Virus record (IMG/VR): IMGVR_UViG_3300013233_000093
Location: 158,907 to 222,906 of that record
Reading direction: 5' to 3' (one strand)
Length of the DNA stretch: 64,000 nt
How positions within the stretch are numbered: the stretch's first letter is position 1; every line of letters begins with the position of its first letter. A program made the translations under genes and the position numbers. The notes under the pieces were generated by a model. It was not told the DNA's origin, did no database searches, and worked only from the letters and a program-made list of their open reading frames with translations. Below are positions 40,648-52,620 of the stretch, one piece after another.

Positions 40648-42096
40648 CTAGCTTGCGTCACCGCCCACATGTTTGTTTACTTGAGTCGCTATAAACAACT
40701 GCGTATCTGTCCAATGCTTTAAGACCTTCACGCCTAATGCATACGACGATGTATAACTACTTATGATGCCAGTGATTGCACTGGCGACTCGGTCGTTTTT
40801 GCCGATCTTGGTGAGGCGGGCGGTCTTAGCATAACCGGGCTCATGGAGAGACCCGTCTCGCAATGAATCTTCATTGCTTTCATGCGCCTTCTTTATTTCT
40901 TTATGCATCTCCTTGACCTTCCCCGACATGACCTTGGCCGTAACTTCCGAAAGCTCTACCAACTTAGCGACATTACCATGACGATTTATACGCTTATCTG
41001 TGGGGTCGTCAGGTATAACGTAATCGACCGGAATGTATATATGGTCGTGTTTATACGTATCGGGTAGGTAATCGAAGCTCCACGTCGGTATGGACTGGAC
41101 GTAGTCCACCTTCGTCCTCACCCGGCCACCTATTAACTGATCGTGGATAAGCGGTTCCTTGGTGTTAATTAATTCACCTGGCATAGCGATGCCTTGCTCC
41201 TCTAACCGCTCAGATAGATATGTGAGTGGCGGGGATATAAAACCCGACGTCTCAAAATAGTTGCGACTAATTGCATCGAGGTACCTTTCTTCTGCATCAG
41301 ACAAGGAGAAGCCACTGTCAAAATATGAGGACATGCGCTTTACTAACGCACCCGTGTTATTTAAGGTCGTGCGTGCCACTGTATTGTTGATCGCAGCGTA
41401 CGCGGTTCGGGCACAAACATCTCCGTTCACACCTATGTGATCTTTGTGATAGTCTATGTATTCGCCATCTTTATTAAAGAATCCCCATTTTAAAACGTGG
41501 TCTAGTTCCTTGTCACGTTTTCCACGAGGACATGGTACTGAGAAGAACCCCTCTTTGTCAGTAGGTGGTAAAAAAGGTTGCGCGTCTTCGTCGCGCTTCG
41601 AGGCTTCCTCTCTACGCGCGTCTTCGTCGCGCTTCGAGGCTTCCTTCTCACCGGAGATTATTTTGCGGGTATCTGTGTTTATCCTGTCTTCCCTTGCTTG
41701 GATTTTGCCTATGACGCCTCCCACGGGAGTAGGCTTCTCTTCATACACACTTCCAGGAGTATCAGGGTTAGTGCTGCCCTTACCTCCGGTAAGCCACTCC
41801 CAGAGTCTTTTAAGGCCGTTTACCACTGCCATGACTGCTTTTACTATAAGCTTCCACACAGCCTTAAAAGCACGTCCTATAAACTGCATGCCTGCCACAG
41901 TGTCTGCGCCTATGGAGTCGCCAGACACCCACTTCACACGGTCTTTGTCTAGGCAAAGCATACCGGCAATACTATCAGACTCCTCATAGATCTTAATAAC
42001 ACGACCACTAAGCACCCCATCCAACACCAACTCAGCATACTCCAACTCACTCACCACACTACTATCCATTACTGTTCTCCAGGTAATATACGACAT
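40648..42096 (-). CDS. Internal head protein paralog
   Basis: Acidic leader, AGMQ, amphipathic helix VWKLIVKAV...WLTGG. Confidence 0.7.
   Translation of the reverse strand: MSYITWRTVMDSSVVSELEYAELVLDGVLSGRVIKIYEESDSIAGMLCLDKDRVKWVSGDSIGADTVAGMQFIGRAFKAVWKLIVKAVMAVVNGLKRLWEWLTGGKGSTNPDTPGSVYEEKPTPVGGVIGKIQAREDRINTDTRKIISGEKEASKRDEDARREEASKRDEDAQPFLPPTDKEGFFSVPCPRGKRDKELDHVLKWGFFNKDGEYIDYHKDHIGVNGDVCARTAYAAINNTVARTTLNNTGALVKRMSSYFDSGFSLSDAEERYLDAISRNYFETSGFISPPLTYLSERLEEQGIAMPGELINTKEPLIHDQLIGGRVRTKVDYVQSIPTWSFDYLPDTYKHDHIYIPVDYVIPDDPTDKRINRHGNVAKLVELSEVTAKVMSGKVKEMHKEIKKAHESNEDSLRDGSLHEPGYAKTARLTKIGKNDRVASAITGIISSYTSSYALGVKVLKHWTDTQLFIATQVNKHVGGDAS
41580..41645. repeat. 30-bp direct repeat, 36-bp period, in frame
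   Basis: Encodes EASKRDEDA twice. Confidence 0.9.
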
Positions 42097-42097
42097 A

Positions 42098-42123
42098 AGA
42101 TCAGCTCCTTAAGGAGCTGATCT
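42098..42123. promoter_or_regulatory. Perfect 26-bp palindrome containing the RBS of 40648..42096
   Basis: AGATCAGCTCCTTAAGGAGCTGATCT. Confidence 0.75.
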
Positions 42124-42136
42124 GTATGTGGTTTAG

Positions 42137-43345
42137 TTACATAATCCCGGCAAGCAAAATCTTACGTTTAAGCTCTGTGTCATATGCAATCGTGGCCGTC
42201 AGCGATTTAACAGTTTTAGACAGTATTCCTAACGATGCAGTTTCCTCGCTTAGGTACGCTGAAAAAACGCGCGCGCGCGCAGTGGCTTCGGTTTCGTGGT
42301 CTTCTTCTTTTGATAAGGCACCTTCGACCAGTCTTCTACTGACCGTCACGCCCTTTGTAAGTGTGGCATGTGCCTTCTCCGTCGCATTCACGACGGCGGC
42401 AATCGCAGCATGGGTTTCCTTAACAACATCAGCATTTAATTCGCCGTTTTCGACAACAAGGGTGGTTAAGGATTGTGCTTGACCTGCGATCAAAGTCATC
42501 TTAAGCGACGTCCCCTTTTTTAGCATTGCAATTGACTTGCCTCCACCCATTAGCATCCCTGTAACCCATTCACCGTCTTTAAGGGCTCTAGGATCATCCT
42601 TTATACCCAGAGCGCCCAAAGCATTCTTTTTACGCGTGTGCACAATATCTACAAAACCGGCAAGGTTAAACTTGCCCTTAATGTCCAGTACCACGTGTTT
42701 AGCGGCGGTCAGCATCGCCTTCCCCCCGGTCTTCGCGTAAAGTGCCATGTATGAGTTAAGCATTTTGTATGTGGCCGCGGTGGCTTTGCTGTCAAGCCTT
42801 CCATCAGGCGAAACGATGCCGTTATCTTCTATCTTCTTAATTAAGTCGCTGAACTTTTTACGTACATCGCCGGTAAGTTTAATCTCGAAATCGAGGTCAA
42901 CAGTTGACGTAGGCGCGTACATGCCTTCCGGCAGTGCGGCGCGTGCCCAGTCTACGCCGTCCGAGATTGCCTTATTAATTTGGGCGGCGTGTCCGCGAAT
43001 CTTGGTGGCTGCCTTGTCTTGAGCCGCCATGGCCTTACCGATCACACCTCCTACTGGAGTATCGGTCTTTTCATAAGTGGCGCTGACAGTACCTTTATTG
43101 TTAGACTTCTTACCACCTGTGAGCCATTCCATCAGCTTTTTCAAGCCATTCACTACTGCCGTGACTGCTTTGACGATCATGTCCCATACAAACTTAAAGG
43201 ACTTCTTGATAAACTGCATGCCAGGTTGTTTGGCTTCCAATCCTCCAGCAATGCTATCGCCGTCGTACGGCATCTCGGTAACACTTCCATCGGTGACAGC
43301 GTCTAACAAAGAGATCGCTTCGCCTAATTCTACATATGCTTGCAT
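42137..43345 (-). CDS. Internal head protein paralog
   Basis: PGMQ-FIKKSFKFVWDMIVKAV...WLTGG. Confidence 0.7.
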   Translation of the reverse strand: MQAYVELGEAISLLDAVTDGSVTEMPYDGDSIAGGLEAKQPGMQFIKKSFKFVWDMIVKAVTAVVNGLKKLMEWLTGGKKSNNKGTVSATYEKTDTPVGGVIGKAMAAQDKAATKIRGHAAQINKAISDGVDWARAALPEGMYAPTSTVDLDFEIKLTGDVRKKFSDLIKKIEDNGIVSPDGRLDSKATAATYKMLNSYMALYAKTGGKAMLTAAKHVVLDIKGKFNLAGFVDIVHTRKKNALGALGIKDDPRALKDGEWVTGMLMGGGKSIAMLKKGTSLKMTLIAGQAQSLTTLVVENGELNADVVKETHAAIAAVVNATEKAHATLTKGVTVSRRLVEGALSKEEDHETEATARARVFSAYLSEETASLGILSKTVKSLTATIAYDTELKRKILLAGIM

Positions 43346-43358
43346 CGGTCACGTGTCC

Positions 43359-43958
43359 TTATTTAAGGTTAAGTAGTAAGGCTTCAAGTACGTCTACTTG
43401 GGCCTGAGTGTCGGCTGTACGTCCGATCCAGTGCTTTAACTCCGCATAAGCGGTGCGTCTGTCTGTGATCGCCGCTAGCCTATTGCGTTCCAGTAATGCA
43501 GCTTGTGCAGGGGTCACTGGAACCGTAATGGGATATCGATGTATCTGTACCTGTGGCATGACGCCAATAATGTCTGAACAGTAATCCTTAAACCCGTCTG
43601 TAATGGCGGTGATGTCCAGCTTGTCTGGAATCAATCCAAGGTCTGCGGATAAGATTACATTTGTGTAATCTGAAGTCTGTGCAGGTGGTGCAGCTACTAT
43701 ATATGATTCGGGTAAGTTTATCGCATTACCCGATGTCGTGCTGATAAGCGTGACTATTTTTCCACCTGTGGCTAGGTCTGCCGCGTAGACTGTGGCAGGT
43801 AATCCAAGCGGTTTGTAATGTGCGTTATACACATCCACGCCTGAAAGCTGTAAGGATTCAAAGGTCTCTATCGCACTGCATTTTAATACCTCTCCAGGAG
43901 CCACTGTGAAGGGCGCAGAGAGTTCGTATACACCAACCGCATCAATTGACGGTAACAC
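43359..43958 (-). CDS. Conserved phiKZ-like hypothetical/virion protein
   Basis: GVYELSAPF, YKPLGL, LPESYI, LSADLGLIP. Confidence 0.6.
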   Translation of the reverse strand: MLPSIDAVGVYELSAPFTVAPGEVLKCSAIETFESLQLSGVDVYNAHYKPLGLPATVYAADLATGGKIVTLISTTSGNAINLPESYIVAAPPAQTSDYTNVILSADLGLIPDKLDITAITDGFKDYCSDIIGVMPQVQIHRYPITVPVTPAQAALLERNRLAAITDRRTAYAELKHWIGRTADTQAQVDVLEALLLNLK

Positions 43959-45234
43959 TGTTTACCACCTCCAGATAGCTCTTACGGGTCACCAGCAGTT
44001 GCGATGTACCGTCTACGATAAACGTAAGGTAGTCTAGACGATTATCCGATAACCGAGACACATGTAACGGTAAATCTTGCGTACCGTCGTCAACTTCAGC
44101 TAATCGTATGACCTCTTCTATAGTAGCGACTGCATCGCGAGTGATGGACGTCAGTCTTCCTAAGTTCACGTCGTTAAGAGGAATGACAGCGTAATCAGGA
44201 TACAGTGTACGGAACGGAGTCCGATCGCCAATGCCCATGGGTACTGCTACAAAGCCAATGGACTTATAATGCGTGGTGGCGTGTATTGCACTGCTAAGGT
44301 AGTCTACTGCGTCTGTGGGGAACACAATACCAAGTGCATCCAGAATATCCCCTGGTGATGTCACAGGTGAATACTGATAATCCGTGGTGCCACTGGAACG
44401 AATGGACACATTATCCCATCTTGGAATAATCGTCAGTGTGTTTCTGACAATGATGTCAGGTACACGTTCTTGCCAGTAGTCTGGTGTAAGTCCCGTGGTT
44501 TCCAACAGATACTTACGAATCGCATCCAGTTGGTTTTGCGCATCACTGGCTTGTTTGCCGTAACACACCAACGCCCACGTGAGCATAATGGATTCCAGGG
44601 AGACAGGATCGATCCATTTCAACTCCATGGTCTCGACTGTGGTTTCTGGATCTCCGTCCTTGGCTAACTCTAATGCCTTATAATGCGTAGCCACATTGAT
44701 CTGTGACAACGACCAGCGCAAATCAGCAGCAGTCCCTTTAAGGTCGTTTACATTTGGTACGGGTGGCACAACACGGACGTCGTACTCGTCGTAGGTCTCT
44801 TGGAAACTGGTGTCTGATAACCAGATCTTTACATCGCAAGACACCGTCCCGTAAACGACACTCCACGCTACCCAAGCGGGTAGCGTAACGCTTCCACTGA
44901 CCATTGATGGTCCAGCGGAGATGTTACTCAGTTGGTTGTTTCTGGTAGATAGCTGATCTGCGAAATCTGAATCCGGTGTGGCATGGATTACAAAGTCGTT
45001 TAGCACGGCCAATGTGGTCAGGTCAAAGCCATCTGGTACGTGCGTGGACACACTGTCCAGCTTAGAACTGAAAACCACCAGTGAGACTTCAGGATATAGC
45101 TTATCCGCTAAGTTGGTTTTACTGGTGCTGTATGTGCGACTGATGGGCGATAGCTCACCAAAGCCCGCTGTGTTACCTGTAACGCTATCAAGCTCTTTGT
45201 TGATGTTACAGAAACCCTTTAAAGAATATCCCAT
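43942..45234 (-). CDS. Virion structural protein (phiKZ gp157-like)
   Basis: YSLKGF, FGELSPISRTYS, KIWLSDTSF..YDEY, IIPRW. Confidence 0.65.
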   Translation of the reverse strand: MGYSLKGFCNINKELDSVTGNTAGFGELSPISRTYSTSKTNLADKLYPEVSLVVFSSKLDSVSTHVPDGFDLTTLAVLNDFVIHATPDSDFADQLSTRNNQLSNISAGPSMVSGSVTLPAWVAWSVVYGTVSCDVKIWLSDTSFQETYDEYDVRVVPPVPNVNDLKGTAADLRWSLSQINVATHYKALELAKDGDPETTVETMELKWIDPVSLESIMLTWALVCYGKQASDAQNQLDAIRKYLLETTGLTPDYWQERVPDIIVRNTLTIIPRWDNVSIRSSGTTDYQYSPVTSPGDILDALGIVFPTDAVDYLSSAIHATTHYKSIGFVAVPMGIGDRTPFRTLYPDYAVIPLNDVNLGRLTSITRDAVATIEEVIRLAEVDDGTQDLPLHVSRLSDNRLDYLTFIVDGTSQLLVTRKSYLEVVNSVTVN

Positions 45235-45296
45235 GGTGACCTCCCAGCGGTCATTTAATTATTAACGATGCATAAATTTAATGGACGGATGATCCG

Positions 45297-45551
45297 ATGA
45301 CTTACGACGAACCTAGCTTTTTAAATTACTTGTGGTCTGCGCGTCCTGATTGGATTCGCTTAGATGCAAAAACCTTGCTGATTACTCTGGTTTCGATTGT
45401 ACTCATTGGATTGTTCATCGGTGTGGCATTGTCTGCTGGCGACACTGACTCTGTCAGAACCGTCATAGAAAAAACCGCTACATTGGATACATACGCTTTA
45501 GACGAGTTACGTAACTACAATTCCCTGTTGGATTCACTTAGGAGACATTAA
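45297..45551 (+). CDS. Putative inner-membrane spanin (Rz-like)
   Basis: One TM then helical domain; directly upstream of lipoprotein. Confidence 0.45.
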   Translation: MTYDEPSFLNYLWSARPDWIRLDAKTLLITLVSIVLIGLFIGVALSAGDTDSVRTVIEKTATLDTYALDELRNYNSLLDSLRRH

Positions 45552-45994
45552 TGCGATACATTATGTTACCACTTCTTGTGCTGCTGTCTGGCTGTGCACA
45601 TACCGTAAGACCCCCTATCGAGGTAAACGTACCGCCTGCTATGGCACCGAACATCATTGTTAATGTCACCCCCACTCCACAGTCGTGTCCTGAGCAAAAA
45701 ATACACGTGGTGCTAAAGGACAAGATTGTCTATCGTGATAAGAAATGTCCTGTGTTACACAAGCCAGTTGCGTTAAGTCCCGTGAGTAAGGACGACTGTA
45801 CCATGTCAAAATCCGATTATCTGGCATTGAAGACGTATCCCGACTACGAACTGCCGCCAGCAGCTACGGATAAAAAACCCTCACTTGGCCTCGTGATTAA
45901 TCACTACCGTACGACATTACATGAGGCAGTAACTGCTTTACGTAAACTGGAAGACACAAACAAGGGGATTGTGAATCGTGTTAAGTGCAATTGA
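45551..45994 (+). CDS. Lipoprotein, putative o-spanin (Rz1-like)
   Basis: LSGC lipobox, Pro- and Cys-rich. Confidence 0.6.
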   Translation: MRYIMLPLLVLLSGCAHTVRPPIEVNVPPAMAPNIIVNVTPTPQSCPEQKIHVVLKDKIVYRDKKCPVLHKPVALSPVSKDDCTMSKSDYLALKTYPDYELPPAATDKKPSLGLVINHYRTTLHEAVTALRKLEDTNKGIVNRVKCN

Positions 45995-47327
45995 GGTACC
46001 TGAGGTAGCGGCGGAGTCGTGTGAAGTGTATGTGGATGGTGGATCTGCACCTACTAATCCTGGACCAGGGTCTTGGGGGTTTTACGGGAAGTCCAGTGAT
46101 GGACTGGAGTATAATGCATGCGGTCACTGTGGGGATCACGTGACGAACAACCGTGCTGAGTTAACTGGGTATATCCGTGTATTGGAGACGGCGATTCATC
46201 AACGCTGGAAACAAGTACACGTTATCTTTGACAGCATGTACGTTTTGAAGGGTTCTTCTGAATGGATGGCTAAGTGGATCAAAGCCGGTTGGAAGAAGTC
46301 TTCGGGCGACGCCATATCGAATCGTGATGGCTGGGAGCGTGTGAATCAACTTCAGATCCATTTGAAGTCAGAAGGCGTTAAGGTGACACGGCAATGGGTG
46401 AAGGGTCACAGTGGCGTAGAAGGTAACGAGATCGCGGATCAGCTTGTGCATAAGGCAAGACAGGCTGCTAAGAACGGCGAGAAGCGTGACGTTATTACCA
46501 TGAAGACCGAGAAGGAAGTCAAACGTAAACCTAAGGCGTCTGTGTACAACAAGTTGCTGGCTGGTAAGACGATGTTGTTTTACACCAATGCACCTCGTAT
46601 AATGGAAGACGGCTACCACGTATACACAATGAACAGTTACTACGGAAAGAATCCGCTAGGTGAACTGCATGGCGTAGACAGCGTAGATGCACATTACTCT
46701 GTGATTATGACCAAAGATCCTGTAACGCAGATAGACGACATTATGCGGGTGCAAGATAAAGTCACTCCTGATGACTTCGTACATCCAGTAGCTGCTATTA
46801 TGTCCAGTATCGTGAAGCCTGTAAACTGGGAAGTGTTGACTGAAACTAAGGGCGTCCATTTAAAGCACCGTAGGCTATCCCTAGAGACGATGGAAGGAGA
46901 ACCCATCACCAACTACATCCGACCGCCTAGAACCGCTTACATGGCAATGGACAAGCTCTCATTCATGATCGGACAGCTCACGTCGATACGTGAAGACAGT
47001 ATTGGTAAAGATAAACTGCACGACGTCACAGACTTGTTCTACGAAAAGGATAAGAAAGGCAATCTAAAGATCACAGAAGGTCTAAAGTCACAGTCGATTA
47101 AGATACCCGTAAAGATGTGCGGTAAAACCGTATCACTTACGCTATCCCTAGGCATTGACATTCCACCACGTAATAACTTTACCGCCATAGGTAAGGCAAC
47201 AAAAGACATAAAGATTCAGATCTATACGTACGATGCAATGAAGAATAACTTTCGTTACGGATTAGTAATAACCACAGATGATGATTACGCGCTCTATCGG
47301 AGCTCTGCCAATTTAAAGATGGTGTAA
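45978..47327 (+). CDS. rnhA: Ribonuclease HI with phiKZ-type C-terminal extension
   Basis: YVDGG..NPGPG, TNNRAEL, DSMYV, WVKGHSGVEGNEIAD. Confidence 0.93.
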   Translation: MLSAIEVPEVAAESCEVYVDGGSAPTNPGPGSWGFYGKSSDGLEYNACGHCGDHVTNNRAELTGYIRVLETAIHQRWKQVHVIFDSMYVLKGSSEWMAKWIKAGWKKSSGDAISNRDGWERVNQLQIHLKSEGVKVTRQWVKGHSGVEGNEIADQLVHKARQAAKNGEKRDVITMKTEKEVKRKPKASVYNKLLAGKTMLFYTNAPRIMEDGYHVYTMNSYYGKNPLGELHGVDSVDAHYSVIMTKDPVTQIDDIMRVQDKVTPDDFVHPVAAIMSSIVKPVNWEVLTETKGVHLKHRRLSLETMEGEPITNYIRPPRTAYMAMDKLSFMIGQLTSIREDSIGKDKLHDVTDLFYEKDKKGNLKITEGLKSQSIKIPVKMCGKTVSLTLSLGIDIPPRNNFTAIGKATKDIKIQIYTYDAMKNNFRYGLVITTDDDYALYRSSANLKMV

Positions 47328-47335
47328 AAGCCATC

Positions 47336-47365
47336 CATCCACTGACTCCTAGGAGTCAGTGGATG
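47336..47365. terminator. Perfect 30-bp palindrome between convergent genes
   Basis: CATCCACTGACTCCTAGGAGTCAGTGGATG. Confidence 0.8.
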
Positions 47366-47374
47366 TTGTGCTGT

Positions 47375-48748
47375 TTAGTCGGTAGCGCCTAAGACGTCGG
47401 TTAGAATCTCCTCCGTCATTTTGGAGTAAATAGTCAATGCGTTATTGGCGCGTGATATGATAATCAAGAACTCTTTAATGAACAACAAGAGGACTTTATT
47501 AATCGTAAGGTACATACGTCGTAACTTACTCATCTCAGCGACCACTGTGGTTTTCTTGTTGTTTTTCCACCCGCCGTTTACCATCTTCACCGCTTCATCA
47601 CGGAAACCACCAACAAGCTTCCATGCGTCCTTTACAGACTTCTCTGTCTTAGCCATTAACACATCAAAGCTTTTAGCCTTCCACGCAATCTGTCCTTTAC
47701 TTTGTATGAACAAAGAAGTAGGTTCACTGGCATGCGTTGTTACGCGCATCACGTCAACCGTGCCGTCATCGTGATACAGGAGACGGATGCGTTTCTTTGC
47801 CATCAGCAATTCGGTGTCGTATGCGTTGCCCTGTACATGGGTTGCTTCGTGCATTCTAAAGATCGCAGGCAGTTCTTCGGTTAACGCCGTTTGCAACAAC
47901 TCTTGATGCTCGACTAGGCCACCCAGTACTTCATCTTCATCGTCACTAGAGAAGCTGCCTTTCTTTTTGAACTCTGCTAGAAACTTAGTCGCGGCGATAT
48001 CTGCTTGTCGAACTGACGCAAACAGTTTAGAAAGTCCTTCGATTGCCCGTGTGTTAATCGCGGCCTTTAACGTGCGCTCTGCTTCTGCCGTGTTCATACG
48101 GTTAATGTCGTCTTCCGTAGCAGGATAGCTGGTAGCCAACACACCGAGCTGTTGTTTGTACTTGTCAGTCAATGACTTGTACAGCTTTATCTCAGTGATT
48201 GCGACGGCTACTGCATCACGAGGTTCTGACTTTTCCTTATTGGGTTCGGACGCAGACGTATCTTGTCCAGCAGAACCTGCCTTAGAGACAGTCTCTGTTG
48301 TATCCTTAGCACGGACTTTCTCTTCTGTGTTGACTTCCTGCACCTTTTTAGCAGTGACTTCGTCTAACACATTAGAACCTGCCTTCTTACCTACCGCAGC
48401 TGCTTTTGGAATGGCCTTGGCGTCTGCCTTATCCCGGGCACCCATGTCCCCACCGACCTTGCCTTTAGTCTTCGGCGATTTCTTTTTATACTCACCACCA
48501 GCGACGTTATGTGGTGGGAATGTGGTACCACTAAACAACCAGTCGAAGAACTTTGTAATCCACGATCCCACTTTGCGTATGGCTGCGATAATGGCGTCCC
48601 ACACGGCTTTGACCATACGGCCAAATGCCTGTGTACCTGCCATTACACGTTCTATGTCAGCATGCATGGAATCGCCCTCGCTGGTGCGATGTCCCATCAA
48701 TCTATCCAACTCAGCACACGCGCTTTCTAATGAAGCTTCGATGGTCAT
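47375..48748 (-). CDS. Internal head protein paralog
   Basis: AGTQ-AFGRMVKAVWDAII...WLFSG. Confidence 0.7.
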   Translation of the reverse strand: MTIEASLESACAELDRLMGHRTSEGDSMHADIERVMAGTQAFGRMVKAVWDAIIAAIRKVGSWITKFFDWLFSGTTFPPHNVAGGEYKKKSPKTKGKVGGDMGARDKADAKAIPKAAAVGKKAGSNVLDEVTAKKVQEVNTEEKVRAKDTTETVSKAGSAGQDTSASEPNKEKSEPRDAVAVAITEIKLYKSLTDKYKQQLGVLATSYPATEDDINRMNTAEAERTLKAAINTRAIEGLSKLFASVRQADIAATKFLAEFKKKGSFSSDDEDEVLGGLVEHQELLQTALTEELPAIFRMHEATHVQGNAYDTELLMAKKRIRLLYHDDGTVDVMRVTTHASEPTSLFIQSKGQIAWKAKSFDVLMAKTEKSVKDAWKLVGGFRDEAVKMVNGGWKNNKKTTVVAEMSKLRRMYLTINKVLLLFIKEFLIIISRANNALTIYSKMTEEILTDVLGATD

Positions 48749-49575
48749 AGTACGTCCTCCAATACATCCACAGTACGGTTATGCGCTGCGATGGCTGCAC
48801 GGGTGTTATACACCAGTACACCTAACAGCTCGGTTTCTTTTGCAGCGGTCTCTACCATGGCGACCAGTAACCGGATTGTGTTTTTATTCTTAGACGCAAT
48901 GCCGGGTTCTTCTTCTACCACTTCCACATACTCGCGAATGGCTTCGGACAGCATTAACTCTGACTTAGCCAGGTCTTTAAGATCAAGGTCATCAATGAGA
49001 TCGTAAAGATCTTCGATTAACTGATTGGCTGTTTCGAAGTCTCTGCCTGACCGATAGACCTTATCAAACCGTGCAGTACCGTTGCCCTCACTACGACGGA
49101 CATCTGTGTTGTACGCGACACCAAGTGACTTGACGATTTTACTCACGTCCCGGACTTCCACGTCCTTAGGTGCCCACAGTTCATTTTGTTCGCGAGTCGT
49201 GGTGACTGCATGCTCGAAGTATTTACGTAACGGGATATACACGCGTTGTTCTATGTCTTGGATTTCCCGCACAGCGGAGATCATAGCTTCGTAATGCGGC
49301 ACGACTTCTCCCACCATATCCAGTGGCACACTGATTGCCAGATCTTCGTACATAGACGGGCTGATCGTCTGCATCACACGCGCAGCCGACTTCCCGTTTT
49401 TAGGTTTGGTGCGCAAGGGCACAAACAACAGCGCGACGTCATTAGCTATGGAACGCAGTGCCTTGCCAATCGCCTTAAAGCCATTTACAACGCTGTCCCA
49501 AATCTTACCCTGTCCGCCGAACACTGACGCATCCTGCGTACGATCCAGGTACGCTTTCATTTCATAAGAACGCAT
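48745..49575 (-). CDS. Virion/head protein (phiKZ gp153-like position)
   Basis: GAGGAGG RBS before ATG 49575; FGGQ-GKIWDSVV helix. Confidence 0.65.
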   Translation of the reverse strand: MRSYEMKAYLDRTQDASVFGGQGKIWDSVVNGFKAIGKALRSIANDVALLFVPLRTKPKNGKSAARVMQTISPSMYEDLAISVPLDMVGEVVPHYEAMISAVREIQDIEQRVYIPLRKYFEHAVTTTREQNELWAPKDVEVRDVSKIVKSLGVAYNTDVRRSEGNGTARFDKVYRSGRDFETANQLIEDLYDLIDDLDLKDLAKSELMLSEAIREYVEVVEEEPGIASKNKNTIRLLVAMVETAAKETELLGVLVYNTRAAIAAHNRTVDVLEDVL

Positions 49576-49886
49576 TACACGCCCTCCTCTCTTAGTTAGT
49601 AAGTCCAGTCGGACAATTAAATCGTCTATACCGCGCACTACCCAGTCTGTAAAAACCCTGCTTAAGTGCATCATTGGCGTTTGTGTCGCATACAAGAACG
49701 AAGTAGCATTCCATGCGATAAACGCATCGGTGTTCTTTAGCTTGTTATAAACGCATTCCGTGCGACGGAGACCATCTTACATAGTCCATGCCCCACCTCG
49801 CGTCAATCACTCTTCCGGGATAGGCAATCCATCCAAGGCGCCTTCGTAATCAGTATGCATGCGCTTCTCCACAAGTGGCCGCTGGG

Positions 49887-51116
49887 CTAACTTTCGGTTC
49901 TGTTTTCATACACATCCACGATTTGTTTAAGCAGTTTGTACCGGATCTCTAATTCTCGTGCGTACGCAGATCCAACTTTAACTATATAATTGGAAAGGTT
50001 CTTCACCAGAGTAAGCTCCCCCAGGTAATACTTGATAAGCATCGAAATAAACACAACGTCTTCGTCTGCTGCGTTGGGATTACCTGCCCTTGCCATAACC
50101 AGTTCGTCCACGATCTTGCTGAATGCCAGTCCCCACGCGTCTAGCACGGCACATATGTCACCGGCTTTAAGCCAAGCGCTTCCCCAGTCCTTGTCAGTGA
50201 ACTCTTTACCAAAAACGAATCGTGATACCTCCGGTTCGTTAGAAAAGTCATTATCTGGAGCAATCGTTATACCAGGTGTTGCCTTCCCTCTAACATAATC
50301 TACCTTTATGGCGACGGACGCACCAGTTCCTGGCAACTTGAAGTTTGTTTCAAACTTAATATCTTCACCAGACGTCGTGCGGTGCGTGGTTCCTGCAGCA
50401 TTGTCCCAGTCACGATGCCTTTGTTTCAAGTGCCACTCGAATTGTTCCGACGCTATTACTGCACCATCCGCGCCACTCGGCTGGTACTTCTGTAGAGTGT
50501 CGCTCTTATTAAATATGTCTCCGTATGCAAGTAACGCCTGCACCCCCCTACCGTCCCACGGACCCCAGTCTACGGCGCCGTCTTTTATAATTAACGTTTT
50601 CTCGATCTCTAGCCTAGAAAAGGTACCAAAGGACTCTATTTCATCAATCACACTTGATTCAGGATACGCTGGCTCAACTACCATATTCAACCCAGCGACG
50701 TCTAAGATGGTTTTCTTAGATATCTTACCCGGACCTACAAGTGACGCCGCCTTGGGTAAGATGTTCAAGCATTTATGCCGATACGTATCGATCATGTTAA
50801 CCACCGCGCCCGCCTTGCCGCCAACCTTTACATATTTGTCTTCGTACACAGACCCGGGTACGCCGTTCTTACCAGACTTCTTACCACCTGTAAGCCATGC
50901 AAAGAAACGTTTTACTTGTTTCTTTACAAAATCCACTGCGCGCATCACCGCTTTCCAAATGGACGATGCAATTTTCTTAATGCCCTGCGTTCCTATTTGG
51001 GAAGCATATGGGATGTTGTTTACTGAGCCAAGTTGCGTCAACAATACAGTAGCGTCTGCAATGCTGGTGTCGAAACTCTCTGATAGTTCATCTTCGTAAA
51101 GCGTATAAGCAGTCAC
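49887..51116 (-). CDS. Internal head protein paralog
   Basis: IGTQ-GIKKIASSIWKAV...WLTGGKKS..PGSVYE. Confidence 0.7.
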   Translation of the reverse strand: MTAYTLYEDELSESFDTSIADATVLLTQLGSVNNIPYASQIGTQGIKKIASSIWKAVMRAVDFVKKQVKRFFAWLTGGKKSGKNGVPGSVYEDKYVKVGGKAGAVVNMIDTYRHKCLNILPKAASLVGPGKISKKTILDVAGLNMVVEPAYPESSVIDEIESFGTFSRLEIEKTLIIKDGAVDWGPWDGRGVQALLAYGDIFNKSDTLQKYQPSGADGAVIASEQFEWHLKQRHRDWDNAAGTTHRTTSGEDIKFETNFKLPGTGASVAIKVDYVRGKATPGITIAPDNDFSNEPEVSRFVFGKEFTDKDWGSAWLKAGDICAVLDAWGLAFSKIVDELVMARAGNPNAADEDVVFISMLIKYYLGELTLVKNLSNYIVKVGSAYARELEIRYKLLKQIVDVYENRTES

Positions 51117-51198: not shown

Positions 51199-52620
51199 AT
51201 GTACGAGGATTTTTCACCGGCTCCGCGCACAGTACCAATGCCAAACCTTGGCTGTCTGTTAGACGTGCCCACTGGGAGTTTCGTAGAAGGTCTAAGGGGG
51301 GAGATGATCCTAAACGGCGGGATGCCCGCCATCAGTTCTTTGGCAGGTCCAGGTAACGCAGGTAAGTCTGAAATCGCCTTTTACATCTGCGCGACTATCC
51401 TTGGTCGTTATAAGAACAGTCATTGGCATTACTATGACACCGAGTGCAGCACCACTTACGGACGTATCGAACGTTTGTTGGCACGTTATCCTGAGTTTGA
51501 TGACATCGACATTTCCGAACCTAATAAACGTTTTATTATGGTGAAGTCAGATCAAGTCATGGGCGACGTATGGTTTGATAAGATCCAGAAGTTCTTATTA
51601 GGTCGTATTAAGGACAAGAAGAAGCATCAAGTGGCCATGCCCTTTAAGACGCCTTCTGGTGGACCGCTAATGGGCTATCAGCCACTGGCCTTACTGGTAG
51701 ACTCGCTCACTGAGTTTAAGGTGTCTGCGGTACAGACAAAGCTTGTGGATAAAAACAACGTGGGTGATTCAGGCCAGAACATGGTCTTTATGTTAGACGG
51801 CAAAGCTAAGACGATCTTTATGTCACAACTGCCTAACATCGCAGCACGGTCTGGCACCCAGTGGTTGCTCGTGGCACACATTGGCATGAAGCATGAGTTA
51901 GATCCTTACGCACCTAAGGCACCTACACTGACGCATGCACGTGCAGGTCGTAAAGCTAAAGGTGTTCCTGAGAAGTTCAGTCTCATCAACGGACATCTGG
52001 TCGAAATCAGTAACTCTGTAGTGCTGAAGAACAGCAGTAAAGACACCTCGGCTAAATACCCACTCACAGCTACGGATAGAGAGCAAGACTGTAAAGACCT
52101 GATGGCCATCAACTCCATCAGCACTCGCAACAAAACAGGTCCGTCTGGTGTTGGGTATCAGTTCTTGACGACGCAGTCTGGTGGTGTGGACGCGGCACTG
52201 TCTGAGTTTAACTACTTACGTGAGCATAACGAGAACACAGCCGCTTGGGGCATGTCTGGTAATGTACAGAACTACCACCTAGACTTGCTTCCAGAAGTGA
52301 CCGTATCCCGTACCACGGTACGTAAAGTCATCGACGAGAACGCGAAGTTCCGCAGAGCACTTACGCTGACCACGGATCTACATCAGATCATTTCTTTGTG
52401 GGGTGGCGACCAGACCAAGTTTGACCACACACTTATTGTCCCACTGTCGCAACTGCACACCGATCTTAAAGAGATGGGATACGACTGGGATGATTTACTT
52501 AACACACGCCCTTACTGGCTTCCTGTAGACGAAGAAGAAGGCGAGCTACCTTACATTAGCATCTACGATTTGTTTCGTATGCGTGCTAAACTATACGTGC
52601 CTTACTGGCACGATAAATAA
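51199..52620 (+). CDS. uvsX: UvsX/RecA-like recombinase (phiKZ type)
   Basis: NLGCLLDVPTG, GPGNAGKS Walker A, YDTE, LLVDSL Walker B, RNKTGPSG. Confidence 0.88.
   Translation: MYEDFSPAPRTVPMPNLGCLLDVPTGSFVEGLRGEMILNGGMPAISSLAGPGNAGKSEIAFYICATILGRYKNSHWHYYDTECSTTYGRIERLLARYPEFDDIDISEPNKRFIMVKSDQVMGDVWFDKIQKFLLGRIKDKKKHQVAMPFKTPSGGPLMGYQPLALLVDSLTEFKVSAVQTKLVDKNNVGDSGQNMVFMLDGKAKTIFMSQLPNIAARSGTQWLLVAHIGMKHELDPYAPKAPTLTHARAGRKAKGVPEKFSLINGHLVEISNSVVLKNSSKDTSAKYPLTATDREQDCKDLMAINSISTRNKTGPSGVGYQFLTTQSGGVDAALSEFNYLREHNENTAAWGMSGNVQNYHLDLLPEVTVSRTTVRKVIDENAKFRRALTLTTDLHQIISLWGGDQTKFDHTLIVPLSQLHTDLKEMGYDWDDLLNTRPYWLPVDEEEGELPYISIYDLFRMRAKLYVPYWHDK

Follow-up and report, generated by a model that had tools for sequence, protein, structure and literature searches.

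Head maturation proteases and their sites in related phages

Cleavage after Glu has been treated as a shared hallmark of T4 and all studied giant-phage prohead proteases (PMC5694885). The published enzymes of the phiKZ gp175 and SPN3US gp245 type (MEROPS/Pfam Peptidase_S80) all cut after this residue, at S/A/G-X-E in phiKZ, S/A/G/T-X-E in 201phi2-1 and A-X-E in SPN3US, as does T4 gp21 (PMC5694885). Their substrates include the capsid protein, portal, gp45-like, gp50-like and internal head proteins (PMC5694885, PMC10052503). The phiKZ-type internal head proteins (Pfam phiKZ_IP) and the SPN3US ejection proteins gp53 and gp54 form paralog families of packaged head proteins, with conserved N-terminal leaders that are removed by the prohead protease.

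The DNA region analyzed here (the window) is the last 64 kb of the 222,906-bp genome of an uncultured phiKZ/SPN3US-like giant phage (IMG/VR record IMGVR_UViG_3300013233_000093), which has direct terminal repeats and contains phiKZ-type genes. The predicted head protein cleavage sites of this phage, including the predicted self-cutting sites of its prohead protease, read G-x-Q, which suggests a change in what the maturation protease recognizes. In the literature searched, no report of a Gln-cutting S80 protease was found. Megablast of the 10.5-kb region carrying the genes described below against phage records gave no match.

Internal head protein genes of the window

Sequence analysis confirmed that five minus-strand genes of the window carry G-x-Q directly before a strongly amphipathic helix (Table 1). 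The 18-mer following each Gln has a hydrophobic moment of 0.58–0.74, which is in the top 1% of each protein (0.62, 99th percentile, for paralog 1), and an invariant Trp column of the helix is conserved across three phages.

Table 1. Location of the genes, predicted protease sites and amphipathic helices (arrow, inferred scissile bond).
Feature	Position	Coordinates	Strand	Description
Paralog 1	window	40648–42096	-	Internal head protein, 482 aa as ORF; likely true start Met10
Predicted site, paralog 1	window	41884–41892	-	G69-M-Q71 (P3–P1), AGMQ↓F
Helix, paralog 1	window	41791–41883	-	About residues 72–102
Paralog 2	window	42137–43345	-	Internal head protein, 402 aa
Predicted site, paralog 2	window	43214–43222	-	G42-M-Q44, PGMQ↓F
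Helix, paralog 2	window	43121–43213	-	
Paralog 3	window	47375–48748	-	Internal head protein, 457 aa
Predicted site, paralog 3	window	48629–48637	-	G38-T-Q40, AGTQ↓A
Helix, paralog 3	window	48536–48628	-	
Fourth gene	window	48745–49695	-	Divergent head protein, 316 aa, phrog_4682
Predicted site, fourth gene	window	49510–49518	-	G60-G-Q62, FGGQ↓G
Amphipathic segment, fourth gene	window	49417–49509	-	
Paralog 5	window	49887–51116	-	Internal head protein, 409 aa
Predicted site, paralog 5	window	50985–50993	-	G42-T-Q44, IGTQ↓G
Helix, paralog 5	window	50892–50984	-	
Prohead protease	genome	15341–16123		Peptidase_S80
phiKZ_IP paralog	genome	112126–113439		PF12699 member

The N-terminal module (leader, site and helix) is shared by a family of ten paralogs. 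None of the five window proteins matches the phiKZ_IP profile (PF12699), even at E up to 5, and they have no Pfam hit. However, one genome paralog is a phiKZ_IP member (79 bits) and shares the site-plus-helix module with the window genes (jackhmmer E 1e-14). The predicted leaders of the window proteins are short (about 40–70 residues with one site), compared to 125–137 residues with several sites in gp53 and gp54. The site of the fourth gene is the weakest of the five, and it was not placed in the motif column by the paralog alignment. It is supported instead by a low-identity alignment of orthologs from two related genomes (see below), in which FGGQ↓G shares a column with PGMQ↓G and VAME↓G.

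Enrichment of the Gln motif in the proteome

GMQ occurs 17 times in the predicted proteome of the phage, against 3.8 expected, and is the 3rd most enriched of 7410 tripeptides. Sixteen of the 17 copies lie in the N-terminal part of head-type proteins or in the protease tail. The extended motif G[MLTV]Q[SAF] was found 28 times, compared to 6.05±2.5 in 1000 shuffles (maximum 14), while the Glu counterpart, G[MLTV]E[SAF], is depleted (5 against 11.5±3.4). Four of the 28 hits are near-identical paralog copies, and G-x-Q with any middle residue is not enriched (134 against 119). Both Gln codons are used at P1 (CAG, 18; CAA, 8), and a codon or genetic-code artefact was therefore rejected.

The prohead protease and equivalence to mapped cleavage sites

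A search of the genome for Pfam S77 (T4 gp21) gave no match, and the protease gene was identified, outside the window, through SPN3US gp245. Its product matches PF20034 at 167.3 bits (cut-off 23.4) over residues 9–235, although protein identity is only 27%. It contains an intact His79/Ser154/Asp180 triad, corresponding to H77/S153/D178 of SPN3US (PMC5694885), and these columns are invariant in 147 aligned sequences. A single-sequence AF2 model was of no use (pLDDT 30), but the alignment-based model (pLDDT 81) had chains of T4 gp21 (PDB 5JBL) as its top PDB hits (E about 2e-4, probability 1.0), which supports a predicted gp21/herpesvirus-protease fold.

Two predicted sites in the C-terminal part of the protease (Q199 and Q229) read VGMQ↓S. 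These two columns are Glu in at least 90% of the sequences. Comparison with sites mapped by mass spectrometry in SPN3US (PMC10052503, Table 2; PMC5694885) revealed that the protease site AQE-203↓S aligns residue for residue with VGMQ-199↓S. The capsid propeptide carries AGMQ↓S, AGLQ↓Q and PGLQ↓A, the last of which is in the same column as the mapped ATE-130 site. The propeptides and the mapped ones are of similar length and carry several sites. The portal site AQE-254 maps within 9 residues of VGTQ-243↓S. In contrast, the gp45 site ASE-20↓S aligns residue for residue with AGME-9↓R, which keeps Glu. In total, P1 is Gln at about 23 unique predicted sites, at which P3 is always Gly.

Among 151 aligned S80 proteases (150 representatives plus SPN3US gp245), the aligned P1 residue is Glu in 143. 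Gln appears in two separate clades (in the protease described here and in the representatives P0003 and P0078), and one protease has Leu. No residue change is shared by all the Gln-type enzymes: position 186 is Gly in 143 of 143 Glu-types, Ala in the protease of this phage and Asp in P0003, but the independent Gln-type P0078 keeps Gly. The S1-pocket comparison was not resolved, and a complex prediction of the protease with a site peptide gave no answer.

Comparison with two related genomes

Word-indexed homolog searches with the protease, the paralog alignment and the capsid protein returned almost only proteins of the same genome. Scans of viral contigs with this protease and with P0078, as well as a metagenome scan with a capsid alignment, found nothing. 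However, two uncultured relatives, G001 (IMGVR_UViG_3300013233_000235) and G002 (IMGVR_UViG_3300009408_000001), were identified in IMG/VR. About half of their predicted proteins match the genome studied here, and the gene order around the protease is conserved.

Interestingly, GMQ is the single most enriched tripeptide in G001 (15 against 3.7), whereas in G002, whose protease is the closest to the one described here (40% identity), AME ranks 3rd (28 against 9.0) and GMQ is not enriched. Over 14 orthologous site columns, Gln is present in 12 in this phage and in 12 in G001, while G002 has Glu (A-M-E) in all 14. The column before the helix reads G[MT]Q in this phage, G[MVC]Q in G001 and AME in G002.

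These results support the proposal of the first-pass annotation that a Gln-specific prohead protease has co-evolved with its substrates, although “Gln-specific” is too strong, because G-M-E persists at two sites. Cleavage and the exact scissile bond are inferred from alignment, without proteomic or biochemical data for this phage. The most probable explanation is that the five genes encode packaged internal head (ejection or inner-body type) proteins, and that the P1 preference of the S80 protease has shifted from Glu to Gln and its P3 preference towards Gly. Its substrates would have changed with it, i.e. the capsid protein, portal, several head proteins, the internal head protein family and the C-terminal tail of the protease itself. 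The protease would cut after Gln during prohead maturation, remove the leader (a probable capsid-targeting signal) and leave the amphipathic helix at the new N-terminus. It probably still tolerates Glu, and perhaps Met or Leu, at P1.

Alternative interpretations

It is possible, though less likely, that the specificity is relaxed or dual rather than switched, the protease accepting Gln and Glu, and perhaps Met or Leu, after a Gly at P3, with Gln being simply the commonest residue in this lineage. G-M-E is kept at the gp45-like N-terminus and at capsid propeptide site 3 (IGME↓A), and the second tail site of the G001 protease is GLM↓S. Moreover, the leaders of five paralogs carry IAGML or IAGMM where G001 has AGLQ and G002 has ASME, and one S80 protease, P0018, has GLL↓S and GML↓S. 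On the other hand, the Glu motif is depleted proteome-wide, 12 of 14 orthologous columns are Gln in two phages that share under 40% identity, and the retained Glu sites may simply be uncut.

It is unlikely that the motif is recognized but that the scissile bond lies one residue earlier or later. A shifted register cannot be excluded from sequence alone, since P1′ is not very variable (Ser, Ala, Phe or Gly). However, Gln occupies the exact column of the mapped P1 Glu in the protease and capsid alignments, and the flanks match the SPN3US logo (a hydrophobic residue upstream and Ser at P1′; PMC10052503).

A structural or helix-capping motif inherited by gene duplication is very improbable. Nine of the ten paralogs do share G-x-Q and the following helix by common descent, and G-x-Q with any middle residue is not enriched. 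Nevertheless, the same extended motif occurs in unrelated head proteins (the capsid protein, portal, protease tail, the gp50-like protein and the genome 104290 protein), at or next to positions of mapped SPN3US cleavage sites, and the column switches in G002 to A-M-E, which is also the capsid and protease motif of that phage.

Equally improbable is a protease that is still Glu-specific, with G-x-Q sites as dead relics and processing at the few remaining Glu sites or downstream of the helix (S-V-Y-E or A-T-Y-Q): some Glu motifs remain and a conserved Y-E follows the helix, but the capsid maturation site and both protease tail sites are Gln in two divergent phages (with the exception of GLM↓S in G001), the enrichment of GMQ in both implies selection to keep it, and the Y-E position is Y-Q in two paralogs and lacks the P3 to P5 context.

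Implications for P1 specificity

The occurrence of a genome-wide set of Gln sites alongside a close Glu-type sister genome makes this phage suitable for finding what sets P1 specificity in this protease fold, and for studying how an enzyme and more than 20 substrate sites can change together without loss of viability. Maturation sites in uncultured giant phages should be predicted from the C-terminal motif of each protease, and not from a fixed X-X-E rule.

A more speculative and rather unlikely possibility is that P1 specificity in gp175/gp21-type prohead proteases is evolutionarily plastic, having moved from Glu to Gln at least twice and to Leu once, each time with dozens of substrate sites. 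For the Leu-type and the second Gln-type lineage this rests on the protease tails alone, since a scan with P0018 found only Glu-type relatives. One possible driver is escape from host defences that detect prohead protease activity through decoy cleavage loops, as recently reported for CBASS CD-NTases (PMC12991175).

Identification of the G-x-Q motif in the window proteins

The five ORFs described in the first-pass annotation were confirmed, and translation of the motif codons yielded the five predicted sites listed in the table below (↓ marks the mapped or predicted point of cleavage). In each case the segment following the Gln residue is strongly amphipathic, with an 18-residue hydrophobic moment of 0.58-0.74, which is in the top 1% of each protein. 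The viral genome (222,906 bp, of which the window covers bases 158907-222906) has direct terminal repeats, and its conserved genes resemble those of phiKZ/SPN3US-type giant phages at only 25-32% identity. No near-identical DNA was found in the phage collection searched.

Location of the features considered in this analysis (window or genome positions, as indicated).
Feature	Position	Strand	Remarks
Window ORF	40648-42096	-	leader nearly identical to those of four other paralogs
Predicted site	window 41884-41892	-	AGMQ↓F
Window ORF	42137-43345	-	
Predicted site	window 43214-43222	-	PGMQ↓F
Window ORF (paralog 3)	47375-48748	-	ASLE↓S in residues 4-9
Predicted site	window 48629-48637	-	AGTQ↓A
Window ORF	48745-49695	-	316 residues; most divergent
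Predicted site	window 49510-49518	-	FGGQ↓G
Window ORF	49887-51116	-	
Predicted site	window 50985-50993	-	IGTQ↓G
Paralog outside the window	genome 36765-38366		leader nearly identical
Paralog outside the window	genome 66926-68527		leader nearly identical
Paralog outside the window	genome 68622-70121		leader nearly identical
Paralog outside the window	genome 91497-93053		leader nearly identical
Paralog outside the window	genome 112126		Pfam phiKZ_IP internal head protein
Protease (gp245 homolog)	genome 15341-16123		
gp45-like protein	genome 102225-103496		
gp50-like protein	genome 109419-110615		
Capsid protein	genome 122422-124683		
Portal	genome 134755-137169		
Gln/Pro-rich repeat protein	genome 129086-130549	+	487 aa; outside the window
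Possible spanin-like or other envelope-acting pair	window 45297-45551 and 45551-45994	+	84 aa and 147 aa
RNase H-type ribonuclease (phrog_3265 and phrog_531) and UvsX-like recombinase (phrog_97)	window 45978-47327 and 51199-52620	+	between and beside the head-protein genes
S80 protease P0018	locus L022:10001-10783		GLL↓S and GML↓S
S80 protease P0078	locus L020:640-1422		TMQ↓S and SMQ↓S

The module composed of the leader, G-x-Q and the helix occurs in ten proteins of the genome, five of which are encoded within the window and five elsewhere. Interestingly, the protein encoded at genome position 112126 carries five G-[LMV]-Q↓[SA] copies in its first 125 residues, while the window proteins themselves have no Pfam hit. 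The FGGQ of the most divergent window protein was not placed by MAFFT in the common column.

Analysis of the whole proteome revealed that the motif is not confined to this family. GMQ occurs 17 times against 3.8 expected and ranks 3rd of 7410 tripeptides (the two most enriched are accounted for by a long QQP and PQQ repeat in a single Gln/Pro-rich protein). G[MLTV]Q[SAF] occurs 28 times, compared to 6.05 +/- 2.5 in 1000 within-protein shuffles (maximum 14), whereas its Glu counterpart occurs 5 times against 11.5 +/- 3.4. However, plain G-x-Q is not enriched (134 against 119), and the signal therefore lies in the extended motif. The preferences derived from 23 unique sites are Val at P5, Ala or Pro at P4, Gly at P3, Met (then Leu, Thr, Val) at P2, Gln at P1 and Ser (then Ala, Phe, Gly) at P1′. 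Both Gln codons are used (CAG 18 times and CAA 8 times).

Comparison with the cleavage sites mapped in SPN3US

Homologs of the SPN3US head genes were located elsewhere in the genome. The SPN3US sites were mapped by mass spectrometry and all follow A-X-E (PMC10052503 Table 2; PMC5694885). The protease autocleavage site AQE-203↓S aligns residue for residue with VGMQ-199↓S of the analyzed phage, in which a second VGMQ↓S follows at residue 229. The capsid maturation site ATE-130↓ is in the same alignment column as PGLQ↓A, and two further propeptide sites read AGMQ↓S and AGLQ↓Q. The longest capsid ORF probably starts 26 codons too early, since orthologs begin at its Met27. Portal AQE-254 maps within nine residues of VGTQ-243↓S, and a YGMQ↓S lies at residue 186. 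The gp45 site ASE-20↓S aligns exactly with AGME-9↓R, which retains Glu.

The leader of window paralog 3 begins with a phiKZ-type S-X-E motif (ASLE↓S), resembling the sites at positions 12-15 of SPN3US gp53/gp54 and phiKZ gp93. However, it lacks the Gly at P3 that is found at every predicted site of this phage.

The S80 protease and its homologs

The protease matches Peptidase_S80 at 167 bits. Residues His79, Ser154 and Asp180 are invariant in an alignment of 147 family members, in which the two tail-site columns are Glu in at least 90% of sequences. A model built with this alignment has a mean pLDDT of 81, and its only significant PDB matches are the T4 gp21 chains of 5JBL.

An exhaustive profile search gave 657 homologs, the best 150 of which were aligned together with SPN3US gp245 (151 sequences). 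The aligned P1 residue is Glu in 143 of the 151 sequences. Gln was found in the protease of the analyzed phage and in two metagenomic homologs, P0003 (GMQ↓S, then GLM↓S) and P0078, while the homolog P0018 has Leu. A tree of the catalytic domain placed the protease of the analyzed phage next to the Glu-type P0002 (support 0.89), with P0003 as their sister (0.92), whereas P0078 and P0018 fall in other clades beside Glu-type neighbours. Gln at P1 therefore arose at least twice, P0078 representing a second and independent Gln type. Within the clade of the analyzed phage, this may reflect either one gain followed by a reversal or two gains.

Comparison of Glu-type and variant proteases indicated three candidate positions for residues that may set the P1 preference. 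Position 186 is Gly in 143 of 143 Glu-type proteases, but Ala in the analyzed phage and Asp in P0003, although Gly is kept in P0078. Position 106 is His in 83% of the Glu-type enzymes, Lys in the analyzed phage, Arg in P0003 and Phe in P0078, but the Glu-type P0002 has Val. Position 153 is Phe in 84% of the Glu-type enzymes and Val in the analyzed phage.

By profile, triad and fold (the latter predicted), the enzyme is a member of Peptidase_S80, but its predicted sites do not conform to the published specificity rule of this family, i.e. cleavage after Glu. No report of a Gln-cutting member was found in the literature searched.

Comparison of three related genomes

The strongest evidence was provided by the IMG/VR genomes encoding P0003 and P0002, designated G001 (204 kb) and G002 (197.5 kb), respectively. 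About half of their predicted proteins match the analyzed genome. In G001, GMQ is the single most enriched tripeptide (15 against 3.7). In G002, AME ranks third (28 against 9.0) and GMQ is not enriched.

In total, 14 orthologous site columns were compared: protease (2), capsid (4), portal (2), gp45-like, gp50-like, the protein encoded at genome position 104290 (2), the ortholog of the window gene for the 316-residue protein, and the site-plus-helix module. The P1 residue is Gln in 12 columns of the analyzed phage, the exceptions being capsid IGME↓A and gp45-like AGME↓R, which keep Glu (the latter site is GLQ in G001). In G001 it is Gln in 12 columns, the exceptions being capsid GRE and the second protease site (GLM↓S), while in G002 it is Glu in all 14.

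The column directly preceding the amphipathic helix reads G[MT]Q in the analyzed phage, G[MVC]Q in G001 and AME in G002, and the conserved Trp-containing helix follows in all three. For the 316-residue window protein, whose site is the weakest of the five, the ortholog column reads FGGQ↓G, PGMQ↓G (G001) and VAME↓G (G002). This co-variation identifies the position before the helix as a predicted protease site, and shows that enzyme and substrates changed together.

Predicted processing of the window proteins

Since the enriched motif occupies positions equivalent to mapped Glu sites and co-varies with the tail motif of the protease, we infer that the S80 protease cuts after Gln. In the window proteins such cutting would remove a leader of 40-70 residues, which is probably a capsid-targeting signal, like the T4 and SPN3US leaders discussed in PMC5694885, and the amphipathic helix would become the mature N-terminus. 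Membrane or inner-body interactions of this helix are possible. Interestingly, the leader (first 50-60 residues) is nearly identical in five dispersed paralogs, although the rest of each protein has diverged.

The specificity of the enzyme is probably relaxed rather than absolute, since Glu persists at two sites and G001 has Met at one tail site. Moreover, the leaders of the five paralogs carry IAGML or IAGMM at a position where G001 has AGLQ and G002 has ASME, which may represent a degenerate upstream site with Leu or Met at P1. A recent preprint shows that bacterial CBASS enzymes are activated when phage prohead proteases cleave them (PMC12991175). This suggests a possible selective reason for changing specificity, although such a link is speculative.

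Other genes located among the head-protein genes

The genes for the RNase H-type ribonuclease and the UvsX-like recombinase are placed on the opposite strand to the neighbouring head-protein genes. The plus strand also encodes an 84-aa protein with one hydrophobic segment, followed, with overlapping stop and start, by a 147-aa protein that has a lipoprotein-type signal (LLSGC).
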